Assembly: GCA_965202585.1 (NCBI GenBank) | Contig: OZ241829.1 | Location: 66,030,001-66,094,000, forward strand | Direction: 5' to 3' | DNA from: Thalia democratica | Taxonomy: Eukaryota | Length of the DNA stretch: 64,000 nt | In this document: positions 3,001 through 44,369 of the stretch, piece by piece | How positions within the stretch are numbered: the stretch's first letter is position 1 | How the letters are laid out: the number at the start of each line of letters is the position of its first letter | Made by a program: the position numbers and the translations under genes | The notes under the pieces: generated by a model | Database searches by the model: none | The model's input: the letters and a program-made list of their open reading frames with translations, nothing else | What the model was told of the DNA's origin: nothing

Positions 3001-3463
3001 GACAACATGCAAGAAAAAAAAAAAATAAATTCATCAATTTTGTTGTCTTCAAAATGTTGAATTGAATTAACAAAGTCTTAATTAATGTTTAAAAAAAGAA
3101 AATTTAAACTTATTTATGAAAATATAAGTAATCAAACTAAATAGTAACGCTAAAAAAAATAAGGAATTTTTCTTACTATGACGAAATATACCGATTGAAT
3201 AAGCAATTAGCAAGGCCTTATAATCGTTCTACATAATGAAAATATGACAAACAATGTTGTCTGCTGTTTTTTTTTTTTACTTTGAAGTATTTCAAACAAC
3301 TCATATTGATATTATGAATATTCTTGCGGTACGTTGTAAAAAAGTAGAACGAAAAATATAAATTTGTAAAACTTTACATCGGAAAGCTACGAGAATTAGA
3401 ATATGGTGTATGTCTAGCTTTTAATGATTTAGTTTCTTAAACTTAGATCGTACATCTTAGAAA
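1..3463. repeat. Segmental duplication copy, near-identical to 60543-64000
   Basis: The window start cagacttgtatactacag recurs at 60543. The sequences stay colinear, with scattered SNPs and small indels, to atcttagaaa (3463 vs 64000). The ORF track shows paired ORFs at offset 60542. Confidence 0.97.
634..1323 (+). CDS. Last two exons (634-766, 1047-1323) of an upstream paralog of the Sushi/C-type lectin gene; terminal CTL domain
   Basis: aacag|GA TTT GAC... reads GFDIKLTTEKGSWEETRDMCEDMGGQLVHN...; donor GA|gtaagt; acceptor ttattcag|T; reads LVEEAIDSNDVWIGCQR...LCEIGHY* (CTL WxxAxxxC and VWIG motifs). Matches 61176-61865 apart from rare substitutions (SVPRD vs SMPRD). Confidence 0.88.
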
Positions 3464-4739
3464 ATAATTTAGTTAGTGGAACGTCATATACAATGTTTTT
3501 TCTAACAAAAATGCCAGCACGGACCAAAAGTTGTTTGATTTCGAAGGAAGAGTTCCAGAATTAGTTTACTATACCGCCTCAAATCTACTTGAACATAACG
3601 TTTTAATAAAAAAAAATGTTTTAGATTTAAAACTCTTTATTTCTGGAAATCTAGCAATTCTGCTGGAAAGAATTATTTAAGCTTCCCGCCAAATTCTTGC
3701 GATTCAAAACGAATATTTACAATCTAAATACTTTAACAAACGCCGACACGTATTAAGAAAAAAAAGAATACTGAGGATTAACTAAGAAGTTCATTGTAAC
3801 TTTTATAATATTCATATACAAACTAGTTTTTAAAAAACGACATATTATTTTTTCGTAAGATAAAATAGAAAAACGACTTTTAAGATAGTTATTGAAAAAA
3901 CTTTTATCAAAATATATTTATGAGTTATGTGAAAAAAAAAACATTTATTTTAAGCTTCTAAGTTTCGAAAAATAACTGTTACATGTTAATTAATGGTTTC
4001 AACTGCTGAGCTGATTTTAGTAACAAGTTTAGTTGGGTTACAAGTTGTTGAATATGTTATAACATTTTTTTTTATTACAACGATTATTTTCAGGGAAAAA
4101 AAAACTTTTCATTAGTTTTTATAATTTCACACTTGAAATTTTATGCTTACTTTGCAAATTTTAAGTTGTAACCCAAGACACATTTTACCCAATCTGATTT
4201 TTTTCTATAGAAAGTATATTATACTCTTTTTAGTCATTAAAAAACAATAAATTAAAAACCAAAATAAGTGATAGTTTTATAAAACTTATAAGTTTTTTAG
4301 TTTATTGAAAACGATACAGAAATTGACATTCGGTAATATAGTCAAGGGAACTGATTTATGCTTAAATCTTTAAAAATATCAAAGAATTAAATTAATTAAT
4401 AAACTCTAAAATTTTTTATACTGTAGATAAATGATTAGAAGAAAATCTACACAAGTGACTTGTTGCATTTGCATAAATAATCTGAGTAACTTTTTAACTT
4501 TTTTATAACTGTGTTTCTAAAAGTTGGCATAATAGCTTTTAAAAAGTTATTTTACTGTATTAGTGCTGATTAAATGTTTTTGTTAAACGTGTTTTAAAAA
4601 GAATTTCTTTATTTTTTTTTTGGGTAGATCTCAGCACTTATAACAAAAGAAAAAGTATTCAAACTAACAATGTCATAAATATCACTTCATTTCAATTTTA
4701 ACACAAAACTGTTAAATATTTTTAACAAAATTTATTTTT

Positions 4740-5554
4740 TCACCATTCCTTTATGTTCTTTTCCGAAGAAACGAATTCACCGTTCGGGGACTCCACCCCG
4801 ACCGGAAGCGTCGCCAGGTAAACGGGGGCTTCGGCGCCCTGATCGGGCGTCCTCGAGGCCTTATCCCCGCCCAAGTCCGTCTTCACCCATCCGGGGCACA
4901 CCGCGTTGATTATGACGTCACTACCCTTTAGCTTCCTGGCCCACACGAAGGTGAGCGCGGACATGCCGACCTTGGACATTCCGTACGGCTGCTCCACGAA
5001 CCCGTCTTCCTTGCAAGTCCCCCTCCGGCAGCTCTCGACGAACTCCTCCATCTTCCCCGTCAGCTCCTCCTCCGTCAGCGTCTCCCTCCTGAAGAACTTT
5101 TGGTTCTCCTCGCTCAACTGCTTGAGGTACATGATGCTCAAAGTGCTGGACACGTTGACGATCCTGCCACCCCTCCTCACAATAGGAAACAGGATCCTGC
5201 TGATGTCGACGGTTCAAGTGTAGTTCGTCCTCACGCAGTCCTCCGCCTTTTTCACTGCGGCGTCGCGTCGGTCGAGTCGTACGCGATGCCCGCGTTGTTC
5301 ACGATGACGTCGATGCCCCCGTACTGTGACGTCATGAAGCTTTTGAGCCGCTCGATGCTCTTGACGTCGCAAACGTCCAATTCGTGGAACTGGGGGTAGA
5401 GTCCCTCTCTCTCAAGGGTCTTCACCGCCTCCCTGCCGCGCTGCTCGTTCCTGGACAGAATGAAGACGTCCCCGTCGAACTTCTGGCACAGCCCCCTGAC
5501 GATGGCGAGCCCGATGCCCTTGTTGGAACCCGTTACTATGGCAACATTTGTCAT
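4740..5554 (-). pseudogene. CBR1: Carbonyl reductase [NADPH] 1-like SDR, intronless, disrupted by a 1-bp deletion and a nonsense codon
   Basis: MTNVAIVTGSNKGIGLAIVRGLC (TGxxxGIG), NNAGIAY, NVSS, YGMSK (YxxxK), CPGWVKTDLGG...EW* align with vertebrate CBR1 along the whole length. Against the copy at 40715-41148 it lacks one base near 5256 (cact-gcgg vs cactagcgg) and has ACT TGA ACC instead of ACT GGA ACC near 5215. Confidence 0.9.
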
Positions 5555-6957
5555 AATTTTCTCGTGTTTAAAATTTATCTGTCTTAATTTAAATTTTTTG
5601 ATATTACATTTATTAATAATAATATTTTCATTTTTTTTCATAGTATGTAATACTAAATACTTTAAAAAAAAAGAAAAGCAAAGTACATGTTGGAAAAATA
5701 TATTATTTAACATGTTTTACTAACTAGTATGCTAATTAAATGTTTTATACTATTGTTTCAAAAAGGAACAAAATTTTCAAAAGTACTGTGAATAGTCAGT
5801 TTGACTGTTAAAATATTACATCATATAACTTTTTTATGTAAAGTTACTAATTTTCGCGCGAATGAAAGTTACTATGAATAAAAATTTGTGCATAAAGCAT
5901 TGAGTCGAATAAACGTGTAAAGAAGTGTTTATACTTAACACATACTATTTATTTAAATATGTAAAATTGTGAAATTTAAGTTACAACAAAAAAGAGTTGT
6001 TTTATTTTTGTATTAAATATAAATATTAAAACAGTTGTAAATAATTTTGAGATTTGTTCAGCATAGTTAGTTTGTTTTCAGGCAAAATTGTAATCTAACT
6101 GAATTTGTAAGTAATATATATATTTAATAAAACTTTTTACGAACCGTCTCAATTTTACACACAAAACACTTTGAAAGGTCTTCTGTTTATTTATATAAAC
6201 ATTGTAAATCGTGTTTGAAAAATAAACTACGAACTGATGGTAAAACTAACTAAGTTAATTAAGTTTGAATTTAAACAAAAAAAAGCTTAGTTTACTTAAC
6301 TTAAAAACTTGTAAGTCACTTTCATGTATATTTGTTTACAACTACTGTCAATACATGAAAATGAAAAGGCAGCACTTGTTGGTTATAAGTAAAGAACTTA
6401 AAACCAGTGAATGTTGGTGGATCATAAACTAAATGTTCTGTTTAGTCTTGCTGTCTGAAGCCAGATTGTCAGTCAGACTTTTCTATACGCTTTACATTAA
6501 GACGGGCCAACACTCTAGGGTTTTTCAAATATATAGTTTTATCATTTATGTTAACTTTGCGTAACAAAACACAAACTAATTTTTTACTAAAGTAAAGTAT
6601 TATTAAAAGCTTGTAAACTAGACACTATTTAAATTTGAAAAGTAGATACAAATAAATAAAAATCAGAATCAATACGCTCAACGATTTAATTATAAAAAAT
6701 TGATTTACTTTTTTGTAACTAAAAAAATATTCACTTTACTAGTCTAAACGGCAAGTGCAAAATAAATAAGTTGTGAAGCTGCCTAGCTAACCAACTTTCG
6801 GTTATAAACGAAATAAAAACAAGCAAGTCGAGTAAATTAATGTTACATCTTTTACTGATTCTAAAGAACTTTCTGTTGTAATTAAAAGGTTTTTTTTTAA
6901 TAAAAAATTTCTTCACAATTTTCCAACACAAACTACCATGCAAATGTTAAAAAATAT

Positions 6958-9972: not shown

Positions 9973-10283
9973 AACTTTAGGTGAGGACGCTTTGGTTCAA
10001 TATACAGGAAATTCTCAGCATTATTTTCAATGATATTCAATTTTATTTTGAAATTTATTCATATTAATTATTTATATTACTGAATGTAATTTTAGCTGGC
10101 ACTTTAGGTGGCTTTTCAACAATGCAACTTTCTAATAACAAAGTTTTTGTATTCTTTTTTGTATTCTAATAACAAAAATTTTACTAAAGTCAGTTTTAAA
10201 TTAAAACATCAAAATCAACACTAAGCTGAAGTTTGATCGATATATAAATACAGCATATATACGTTATATACCTGTCTTCACTA

Positions 10284-12360
10284 TCTTAGACGTTTAACTT
10301 TTATTTTACGTCCTATCGTTTCGATACTTTGCAATTGTGAACTGATAAGTCGTCTCAAAATGGGTGCCAAATTGCTGATCAAACAAACTAATATTACGTC
10401 ATAATCGACATATAAAGACGAAAATTCCGTACAAATCGTAAATTTTATATCTTATCTTAGACGTTTAACTTTTATTTTACGTCCTATCGTTTCGATACTT
10501 TGCAATTGTGAACTGATAACTCGTCTCAAAATGGGTGCCAAATTGCAGATCAAACAAACTAATATTACGTCATAATCGACTTATAAAGACGAAAATTCCG
10601 TACAAATCGTAAATTTTACATCTTATCTTAGACGTTTAACTTTTATTTTACGTCCTATTGTTTTGATACTTTGCAATTGTGTTCTGATAAGTCGTCTCAA
10701 AATGGGTGCCAAATTGCAGATCAAACAAACTAATATTACGTCATAATCGACTTATAAAGACGAAAATCCCGTATAAATAGTAAATTTTACATCTTATCTT
10801 AGACGTTTAACTTTTATTTTACGTCCTATCGTTTCGATACTTTGCAATTGTGAACTGATAAGTCGTCTCAAAATGGGTGCCAAATTGCAGATCAAACAAA
10901 CTAATATTACGTCATAATCGACTTATAAAGACGAAAATCCCGTATAAATCGTAAATTTTACATCTTATCTTAGACTTTTAACTTTTATTTTACGTCCTAT
11001 TGTTTTGATACTTTGCAATTGTGAACTGATAAGTCCTCTCAAAATGGGTGCCAAATTGCAGATCAAACAAACTAATATTACGTCATAATCGACATATAAA
11101 GACGAAAATTCCGTATAAATCGTAAATTTTACATCTTACCTTAGACGTTTAACTTTTATTTTATGTCCTATTGTTTTGATACTTTGCAATTGTGTTCTGA
11201 TAAGTCGTCTCAAAATGGGTGCTAAATTGCAGATCAAACAAACTAATATTACTTCATAATCGACATATAAAGACGAAAATTCCGTACAAATCGTAAATTT
11301 TACATTTTATCTTAGACGTATAACTTTTATTTTACGTCCTATTGTTTTGATACTTTGCAATTGTGAACTGATAAGTCGTCTCAAAATGGGTGCCAAATTG
11401 CAGATCAAACAAACTAATATTACGTCATAATCGACTTATAAAGACGAAAATCCCGTATAAATCGTAAATTTTATATCTTATCTTAGACGTTTAACTTTTA
11501 TTTTACGTCCTATCGTTTCGATACTTTGCAATTGTGAACTGATAAGTCGTCTCAAAATAGGTGCCAAATTGCAGATCAAACAAACTAATATTACGTCATA
11601 ATCGACTTATAAAGACGAAAATTCCGTACAAATCGTAAATTTTACATCTTATCTTAGACGTTTAACTTTTATTTTACGTCCTATCGTTTCGATACTTTGC
11701 AATTGTGTTCTGATAAGTCGTCTCAAAATGGGTGATAAATTGCAGATCAAACAAACTAATATTACGTCATAATCGTCTTATAAAGACGAAAATCCCGTAT
11801 AAATAGTAAATTTTACATCTTATCTTAGACGTTTAACTTTTATTTTACGTCCTATCGTTTCGATACTTTGCAATTGTGAACTGATAAGTCGTCTCAAAAT
11901 GGGTGCCAAATTGCAGATCAAACAAACTAATATTACGTCATAATCGACATATAAAGACGAAAATTCCGTATAAATCGTAAATTTTACATCTTATCTTAGA
12001 CGTTTAAATTTTATTTTACGTCCTATTGTTTTGATACTTTGCAATTGTGAACTGATAAGTCGTCTCAAAATGGGTGCTAAATTGCAAATCAAACAAACTA
12101 ATATTACGTCATAATCGACATATAAAGACGGAAATCCCGTACAAATCGTAAATTTTACATCTTATCTTAGACGGTTAACTTTTATTTTACGTTCTATCGT
12201 TTCGATACTTTGCAATTGTGAACTGATAAGTCGTCTTAAAATGGGTGCCAAATTGCAGATCAAACAAACTAATATTACGTCATAATCGACTTATAAAGAC
12301 GAAAATCCCGTATAAATCGTAAATTTACGTCTTTTCTTAGACGCCAAATTTTTATTTTAC
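10284..12360 (+). repeat. Left arm: 12 tandem copies of a 171-bp unit plus a partial copy
   Basis: The tcttagacg marker occurs at 10284, 10455, 10626, 10797, 10968, 11139, 11310, 11481, 11652, 11823, 11994, 12165 and 12335. Confidence 0.97.
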
Positions 12361-13465
12361 ATTTTAGGAGCATAAAAAAACGCGTGTCTCTGTTTTGTAC
12401 TTTTAGACCTTATCAAAAACACCTTAAGATATCATGGCGTTTTTTTTAAATGGTTTAAACATAAACTTAATAAACTTTTTTGTGTTGTTATTCTTATAAT
12501 CTTCATGGAATCATAGCAATAAGTTTTATAATAGCTTTTTACTTAAAATACTTTAATAAGTAGAGACTAGAGAGCTTCTAAAAAGGCGTTTTAGACTTAC
12601 GGACTTTATCAAACCATTTAAGAATCTACTACGTTTTTTTTACTCTTTTTAACATAAACTTAATGAACTTTTTTCATTTTATATAACTAACCTTTATAAA
12701 AGTATAGCAACAAAAAAATGTATAAATTAACAAGTTCTAAATAATTTTAATAAATATGATACGACCTAAGATAAACAACACGATGAATTTTGTTGACAAT
12801 TTTAATGAAATGAAACATAATGCTATAAAATATCTACTTGTAACTAATTTAAATTAAATCGAGTAAAATACAGTCAAAATTAAAAATAATATTCTTCATG
12901 AAAAGAATCTTCATCATAATTTTTTAAATAGCCGCAATGTCCACAAAACCACTTAAAATTCAAAAAAGACTCGAAGGGAGAATTATTGTAAGGAAGGCAA
13001 TTAAAATGGAACCACTTTCTACAGTTCTCACATCCCAACTAGAAATTAAAGTTTGAGTAGTTAATCATTAACAACGTTAATTATAAACAGCTATTGATGT
13101 TCTATATTTTAGTTCGGACTGACAGCTATACTAAATTAAGAAATGCTTACTAACCCATTTTACCTTTTCGTTCTTTTTTTTTTATGCCACGCAGGGTCAT
13201 CTCTTTTACATTTGTAGCAAAAAACTTTGTTTACGACTGAAATTAAAAATTACGTACAAATTGATCAATACATAATGTTTAAAAATGTAGTGCTTGCTTA
13301 ATTTTTTTTTCTTTTATTTGTTAGTTGTTTAAATCTTATTAGTTTACCTCCGTCCTTTATTAGACTTGTTGCAATTTCTAAGCGTTTTGAATTCAGAAGT
13401 TCGCAGTTAGTTTCAACACGTATGTTTTTTAAAGAATGAGGAAAGCAAGATATAAATTGTTCTGC

Positions 13466-14642
13466 TTGTACGGAATTTTCGTCTTTATATGTCGATTATG
13501 AAGTAATATTAGTTTGTTTGATCTGCAATTTAGCACCCATTTTGAGACGACTTATCAGAACACAATTGCAAAGTATCAAAACAATAGGACATAAAATAAA
13601 AGTTAAACGTCTAAGATAAGATGTAAAATTTACGATTTATACGGAATTTTCGTCTTTATATGTCGATTATGACGTAATATTAGTTTGATTGATATTCAAT
13701 TTGGCACCCATTTTGAGAGGACTTATCAGTTCACAATTGCAAAGTATCAAAACAATAGGACGTAAAATAAAAGTTAAAAGTCTAAGATAAGATGTAAAAT
13801 TTACGATTTGTACGGAATTTTCGTCTTTATATGTCGATTATGACGTAATATTAGTTTGTTTGATCTGCAATTTGGCACCAATTTTGAGACGACTTATCAG
13901 AACACAATTGCAAAGTATCGAAACGATAGGACGTAAAATAAAAGTTAAACGTCTAAGATAAGATGTAAAATTTACTATTTATACGGGATTTTCGTCTTTA
14001 TAAGTCGATTATGACGTAATATTAGTTTGTTTGATCTGCAATTTGGCACCCATTTTGAGACGACTTATCAGTTCACAATTGCAAAGTATCAAAACAATAG
14101 GACGTAAAATAAAAGTTAAACGTCTAAGATAAGATGTAAAATTTACGATTTGTACGGAATTTTCGTCTTTATAAGTCGATTATGACGTAATATTAGTTTG
14201 TTTGATCTGCAATTTGGCACCCATTTTGAGACGACTTATCAGTTCACAATTGCAAAGTATCGAAACGATAGGACGTAAAATAAAAGTTAAACGTCTAAGA
14301 TAAGATATAAAATTTACGATTTGTACGGAATTTTCGTCTTTATATGTCGATTATGACGTAATATTAGTTTGTTTGATCTGCAATTTATCACCCATTTTGA
14401 GACGACTTATCAGAACACAATTGCAAAGTATCAAAACAATAGGACGTAAAATAAAAGTTAAAAGTCTAAGGTAAGATGTAAAATTTACGATTTATACGGA
14501 ATTTTCGTCTTTATATGTCGATTATGACGTAATATTAGTTTGTTTGATCAGCAATTTGGCACCCATTTTGAGACGACTTATCAGTTCACAATTGCAAAGT
14601 ATCGAAACGATAGGACGTAAAATAAAAGTTAAACGTCTAAGA
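13466..14642 (-). repeat. Right arm: about 7 inverted copies of the same 171-bp unit
   Basis: The cgtctaaga marker ends at 13616, 13787, 13958, 14129, 14300, 14471 and 14642. Confidence 0.96.
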
Positions 14643-14733
14643 TAGTGAAGACAGGTATATAACGTATATATGCTGTATTTATATATCGATCAAACTTCAG
14701 CTTAGTAAAATCAACATTTTCTGTGAAATAATT

Positions 14734-44269: not shown

Positions 44270-44369
44270 NNNNNNNNNNNNNNNNNNNNNNNNNNNNNNN
44301 NNNNNNNNNNNNNNNNNNNNNNNNNNNNNNNNNNNNNNNNNNNNNNNNNNNNNNNNNNNNNNNNNNNNN
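44270..44369. other. Assembly gap (100 N)
   Basis: Run of N. The flanks map to 8668 and 34618 of the upstream copy. Confidence 0.99.

Follow-up and report, generated by a model that had tools for sequence, protein, structure and literature searches.

A recently inserted foldback DNA transposon with 171-bp subterminal repeats, very probably of the Rehavkus group, in the genome of Thalia democratica

Rehavkus elements have been defined by 9-bp target site duplications (TSDs), terminal inverted repeats (TIRs) of 26 to 400 bp, a minisatellite, and a PHD finger, and they have been treated as a sister or outgroup of the canonical Mutator-like elements (MULEs) (Dupeyron et al. 2019, PMC6446971); Repbase has merged them into MuDR (PMC4455052). 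A study of Tribolium describes Rehavkus elements as foldback transposons whose TIRs are long and whose subterminal tandem repeats vary and can expand into satellites (bioRxiv 10.1101/2024.12.02.626372). The foldback shape itself is polyphyletic (PMC3169594), and Mutator transposases that combine a Ulp1 protease with a PHD finger have been described from hydra, lancelet, and plants (PMC2836005). We analyzed a stretch of 64,000 nucleotides of the Thalia democratica genome (assembly GCA_965202585.1, contig OZ241829.1, positions 66,030,001 to 66,094,000 of the forward strand), here called the window. Positions 10220 to 14706 of the window very probably represent a non-autonomous member, shortened by internal deletion, of a low-copy foldback DNA transposon family with a Rehavkus-group (Mutator/MULE) transposase. 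The Rehavkus/foldback kind of element with satellite-like arms is already described.

The family to which this copy belongs shares with Rehavkus (Rehavkus-1_TC, -3_TC, -1_HR, -2_NVi, and -1_DY) the 9-bp TSD, long TIRs with subterminal tandem repeats in variable number, and a transposase with a C-terminal PHD finger, and two of its longer copies carry, as compared by eye, the six conserved blocks of the Rehavkus DDE core (D, PV.E..S..H, D, C..H, PLW, and N..E.(W/Y)F..K). Unlike in Rehavkus, the termini and the 171-bp subterminal unit are specific to the present family, several short introns interrupt the gene, and a Ulp1-protease region, unlisted in the cited Rehavkus descriptions, is present in distant homologues and, as a probable remnant, in the longest copy. 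A unique tip followed by tandem-repeat arms of variable, unequal length is shared with Drosophila Foldback (FB) and Drosophila virilis Tetris, and the 9-bp TSD is shared with FB. The arms of FB and Tetris can seed satellite DNA, whereas no free-standing 171-bp satellite array was found among the scored matches of the present family, every one of which lay inside an element-sized locus. Tm1 of root-knot nematodes (Mutator/Foldback, Phantom subclass) likewise has composite FB-like TIRs, 9-bp TSDs, a MULE-type transposase, and few transposase-bearing copies next to many deleted ones. Tm1, however, is built of 14-bp units with asymmetric end motifs and encodes a transposase of the Phantom/FLYWCH type, in contrast to the 171-bp units, symmetric tips, and Rehavkus-type transposase with PHD finger found here. 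Long, internally repetitive TIRs are also present in Galileo of the P superfamily, but that element encodes a THAP-type P transposase and produces 7-bp TSDs, and the present family shows neither feature.

The element proper is 4,487 bp long and was read directly between two perfect copies of the 9-bp TSD AAAATCAAC (window positions 10211 to 10219 and 14707 to 14715; no strand), a 9/9 flanking match with a chance probability of ~2e-5 at the local base composition. The left terminus is a unique sequence of 62 bp that begins with ACTAAGCTGAAG and forms the outer part of the TIR (10220 to 10281, plus strand); in reverse complement, it is identical to the right 62-bp unique terminus (14645 to 14706, minus strand). 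Inward of this tip, the left arm (10282 to 12360, plus strand) consists of 12.2 copies of the 171-bp subterminal unit, as determined with Tandem Repeats Finder (TRF) (95% matches, no indels) and a monomer table, and corresponds to the right arm of L034, one of the longer copies described below. The right arm (13467 to 14644, minus strand; TRF, 13469 to 14644) contains ~6.9 copies of the unit in inverted orientation, and monomers of the two arms correspond to each other (L1-R1, L2-R3, L3-R4, L5-R6, and L6-R7), with extra units interspersed. The best inverted-repeat pair reported by the repeat finder (10220 to 11479 and 13447 to 14706) comprised 1,260 nt with 95% complementarity. Perfect complementarity extended 212 bp inward from the tips of the element, well beyond the 62-bp termini, since near identity also extends to the outermost monomers. 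When the element was folded computationally as single-stranded DNA, 1,223 base pairs were predicted between the arms (minimum free energy, -1515 kcal/mol), and a hairpin stem of more than 1 kb is therefore plausible for the folded element. The inverted termini, the 9-bp TSD, the 12 versus ~7 opposed units, and a stem of this length had all been proposed in an earlier note made from the letters of the window, and each was recovered in place. With modular inverted tandem-repeat arms, the capacity to fold back, and a 9-bp TSD, the element has the structure of the foldback class.

The distribution of the family was assessed by searching the 802-Mb assembly with the first 31 bases of the terminus, allowing two mismatches and using the reversed pattern as a control. 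The terminus occurred 61 times (30 forward and 31 reverse), and the control 0 times; most of the matches form inward-facing pairs 2 to 10 kb apart. Fifteen of these pairs were read, two of which lay on redundant contigs (C47 and C423), leaving 13 copies other than that in the window. The pairs on C47 (124230 to 128776) and C423 (15373 to 19919) were 100% identical to the window over the element and 1.5 kb of flanking sequence on each side, and these contigs are either redundant or haplotigs. A perfect 9-bp TSD of its own, differing from copy to copy, was found in 12 of the 13 other copies, and the remaining, older copy matched at 8 of 9 positions; when the window copy is included, 13 of 14 independent copies have a 9-bp TSD. 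No clear target-site motif was apparent in 13 TSDs, with position 1 mildly G-rich. All 14 copies follow a common plan of a 62-bp tip and inverted 171-bp arrays of 0 to 27 units per arm, usually unequal in length. The copies fall into subfamily A, which comprises the window copy and about 6 to 8 loci, and the more numerous subfamily B, which is ~87% identical to subfamily A in the tip, ~73% in the 171-bp unit, and ~83% in the interior. The 3′ third of the 171-bp unit (approximately positions 108 to 165) is nearly identical between the subfamilies, and the remainder of the unit has diverged. The interior of the window copy was 3 to 3.6% diverged from those of its nearest relatives, L034 and L043, which are themselves 98.9% alike. 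One copy of subfamily B (L032, G000:C7:41822630-41831660) contains a nested segment bounded by inverted arrays at positions 3589 to 3861 and 5817 to 6101; these consist of 16- to 18-bp repeats (34/52-bp higher-order) of the type GACAAAATTGCACGAGGG, and the segment is probably another foldback-like element that was inserted into it.

Six further copies of the 300-bp left flank of the insertion, each 100% identical to it, lie on the chromosome that carries the window (C5:65769715, 65838530, 65914646, 65956404, 65998162, and 66100413, with the window's own copy at 66039920). Three of the unit spacings are exactly 41,758 bp, and more diverged units (87 to 91%) lie further out (G000:C5, 65.77 to 66.10 Mb). 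The window therefore lies among large duplicated units that are nearly identical and arranged in tandem, an array that may reflect very recent segmental amplification or, in part, redundancy of the assembly. None of the six other units contains the element, and over 500 bp to either side their flanks are 99.6 to 100% identical to those of the window. At each of the six sites, which are paralogous or allelic, the sequence is ...CATCAAAATCAAC|ATTTTCTGTG..., in which AAAATCAAC occurs only once; this is the pre-insertion state. The insertion took place after the units had reached their near identity (differences of at most 0.4%) or, if some units are in fact the other allele, is polymorphic. The presence of empty sites with a single AAAATCAAC in near-identical units therefore indicates that the insertion is recent, and under either the paralogue or the allele reading of these units the movement was very recent.

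An alternative explanation is that the insertion is old and that the empty sites arose by precise excision, by gene conversion between units, or by misassembly of the other allele as tandem units. The three spacings of exactly 41,758 bp might point to redundancy in the assembly, C47 and C423 are examples of redundant contigs, and the interior of the element has diverged from its relatives by 3 to 3.6%. However, it is unlikely that the element was lost precisely and independently six times with one intact 9-mer left behind each time, and the allele reading would still leave a polymorphic site and hence recent movement. The interior divergence does not date the insertion and is no contradiction to a recent one, because cut-and-paste transposition can carry an old copy to a new site. 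We therefore consider an old insertion improbable.

The segment between the arms begins with a degenerate partial monomer at the junction of array and interior (12361 to 12392, no strand), as delimited by junction alignments and by the start of homology to L034 at position 12393. From there, window positions 12393 to 13466 (minus strand) correspond in reverse orientation to positions 4858 to 5929 of L034 (blastn, 96.2% identity over 1,077 bp; 96.4% over ungapped columns). The homology ends at 13466/13467, where the window sequence passes directly into a 171-bp monomer. Within this segment, an open exon remnant of 52 codons (12883 to 13038, minus strand), identified from the open reading frame (ORF) list, encodes the C-terminal PHD finger of the transposase (Pfam PF00628, 27.9 bits; cutoff, 24), and the same exon is present in both L033 and L034 (27.9 to 29.8 bits across all three). 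The spacer of ~1.1 kb (12361 to 13466), which the earlier note had taken to be non-coding, is thus derived from the transposase gene region of the family, of which it retains the 3′ end at 96% identity, including an open PHD exon. The window copy keeps only the terminal ~1.07 kb of this region and lacks a complete transposase gene; ~3 kb of interior, all 5′ of the 3′ remnant, has been lost by internal deletion. As the earlier note had inferred, the window copy is non-autonomous and depends on an external source of transposase. The breakpoints of the deletions vary among the short copies: that of L043 lies ~95 bp earlier, that of L041 lies elsewhere, and L037 retains the opposite (5′) end of the interior. 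A deletion junction common to the window copy and L043 was considered and rejected on the basis of this ~95-bp difference. The differing breakpoints show that the short copies are independent deletion derivatives and not one amplified non-autonomous family, as had been supposed in the earlier note.

Copies enclosing a transposase, for which the same note had suggested looking, were found in L034 (subfamily A, 8.4 kb, C8:48.59 Mb) and L033 (subfamily B, 9.4 kb), in which the gene is damaged and split by introns but bears the Rehavkus signature. The coding region in both copies is divided into short open frames; the gene was read exon by exon, and the results below refer to single pieces and not to a joined spliced protein. 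A Pfam scan of all exon-sized open frames of L033 and L034 identified the PHD finger only. When one frame of 129 residues was searched with HMMER against 1.84 billion representative proteins, 101 proteins matched, including unnamed proteins of 750 to 1,230 residues from a psyllid (Diaphorina citri), mussel, and fish. Ten long homologues were aligned, and D, D, E, and C..H were invariant in the alignment. In hhalign comparisons with the profile of these 10 proteins, pieces of L034 scored 99.4% (E 1e-21) and 97.3% (E 2e-11), and the N-terminal Cys/His-rich exon of L033 scored 92%; tblastn of homologues P0090 and P0053 against L033 and L034 gave E values of 1e-17 to 1e-19 across the core. The conserved blocks of L033 and L034 (LFLDATGSV, YYYA, PVAEFISTAH, IEIDQSW, ICSSHVMK, PLWTG, and TNTYAELWF..LK) correspond block for block, as judged by eye, to those of Rehavkus-1_TC, -3_TC, and -1_HR (alignment in PMC6446971, supplementary file 2). 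A profile search against PDB sequences returned nothing meaningful, and the ESM Atlas gave a language-model lead, and a lead only, to MULE/ZSWIM clusters (0.87 to 0.89).

Of the 10 long homologues scanned, three carry a Ulp1 protease (Peptidase_C48), and a PHD finger exceeded the Pfam cutoff in three; P0053, a carrier of Ulp1, also has a subthreshold C-terminal PHD match (17 bits). A C-terminal Ulp1-PHD module like that of hydra, lancelet, and plant Mutator elements (KI-MULE/VANDAL-like) is present in homologues P0053, P0090, and P0097, with a probable remnant in L033. The trace in L033, a probable Ulp1 remnant within a 2.7-kb segment, is an 11-residue motif around the catalytic Cys (E about 1 to 5). 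Unlike in the KI-MULE/VANDAL-like elements, Ulp1 is represented only by this weak remnant in L033 and is absent from L034 and the window copy. A sister family with 54 to 60% amino acid identity was observed at L058 (positions 3037 to 5876, minus strand; G000:C5:37169500-37179400), with twins on C6. Its transposase has a matching exon-by-exon layout with the exons open, which supports the view that the short interruptions in the transposase genes are true introns.

The link to the Mutator superfamily that the earlier note had drawn is narrowed by the transposase signature of L033 and L034 to Rehavkus. The element is not filed as a canonical MULE, because the Pfam MULE model (PF10551) does not match. 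Several observations nevertheless speak against the assignment as a recently moved Rehavkus-group element. PF10551 remained unmatched both in the exon pieces and in the ten long homologues; the match to the Rehavkus references was made by eye against a published alignment and was not scored; and the connection to Mutator runs only via Rehavkus, in addition to the weak language-model lead. The distance of the window copy from its nearest relatives (3 to 3.6%) makes its sequence lineage older than the insertion event, and, oddly beside a very recent insertion, no demonstrably intact family transposase was found in the assembly, in a reading that left out four long copies (C6:64.59 Mb, C8:44.75 Mb, C5:13.56 Mb, and C7:50.13 Mb).

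Since foldback-like TIRs occur in unrelated superfamilies, we considered whether the element could be a foldback-shaped member of another superfamily, such as P-like Galileo, Zisupton, Merlin, or hAT. The lack of a match of the family transposase to the Pfam MULE model would fit such an origin, and Ulp1 domains occur in Ginger1 elements too. TSDs of 7 bp are expected for Galileo and other P elements, of 8 bp for hAT and Zisupton, and of 4 bp for Ginger, in contrast to the 9 bp in 13 of 14 independent copies; neither the 7- or 8-bp TSD nor the matching transposase of Galileo, Zisupton, or hAT was found. No THAP or integrase signatures were detected, and the catalytic blocks match Rehavkus sequences block by block, which makes another superfamily very unlikely. 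A local inverted duplication or palindrome of a 171-bp satellite, without any transposon, would account for the long, imperfectly mirrored satellite-like arms and had been put forward in the earlier note in case the termini occurred nowhere else or their copies lacked TSDs, but it is refuted, and has next to no probability left, by base-exact ends that recur 61 times genome-wide, by a 9-bp TSD specific to each copy (12 other perfect ones, and 8/9 in one older copy), and by the precise insertion evident from the six empty sites.

Given an internally deleted Rehavkus-group copy that moved very recently, the source of the transposase is of interest. In the assembly, only four loci were found to carry DDE exons at least 70% identical to those of the window family. 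In L033, a stop codon interrupts the conserved PLW block, and L034 has all conserved core blocks open and is without the N-terminal exon of L033 and the 2.7-kb segment that holds its probable Ulp1 remnant; of the two other DDE-bearing loci, one contains three stops and the other is partial. More distant relatives of the CxxH exon (28 to 33% identity) were observed in stop-free frames of 760 to 1,000 codons at G000:C1:53640910, C5:37443352, C4:4936498, C10:23219785, and C2:55582835, and these frames may represent intact MULE-type transposases without introns, or else domesticated genes. It is conceivable, if rather unlikely, that the element was mobilized in trans by an unexpected source, either a spliced product of L034 that is altered at its 5′ end and lacks Ulp1 or distant MULE-type genes that recognize the 171-bp arrays. 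If true, this would be a case of natural cross-mobilization of satellite-armed foldback elements and would indicate how the arms spread 171-bp arrays around the genome.

In the mechanism that we propose, a DDE transposase supplied in trans would bind the termini and probably also the repeated 171-bp subterminal units, of which the 3′ third, conserved between the subfamilies, is the best candidate binding module as judged from sequence comparison. The transposase would then excise the element and reinsert it with 9-bp staggered cuts at the target. The internal deletion may have resulted from abortive (interrupted) gap repair, and the arm arrays would lengthen and shorten by unequal exchange or slippage, giving the range of 0 to 27 units per arm, while staying roughly mirror-imaged.

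Elsewhere in the window, a GC-richer block ~4.5 kb from the element (4740 to 5713, minus strand) contains two ORFs of 146 and 153 amino acids, which look like a gene for a short-chain dehydrogenase or carbonyl reductase (TGSNKGIG Rossmann motif). An assembly gap of 100 N is present at 44270 to 44369.

The element leaves existing knowledge unchanged; it serves the repeat annotation of this genome and marks recent transposase activity. With filled and empty sites in near-identical units, the locus offers an unusually clean view of the states before and after one transposition. The inverted, satellite-like arms of such elements promote rearrangements and can seed satellite DNA, as in Tribolium and Drosophila, and the locus shows very recent mobility of a Rehavkus-type foldback family in the genome of T. 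democratica.

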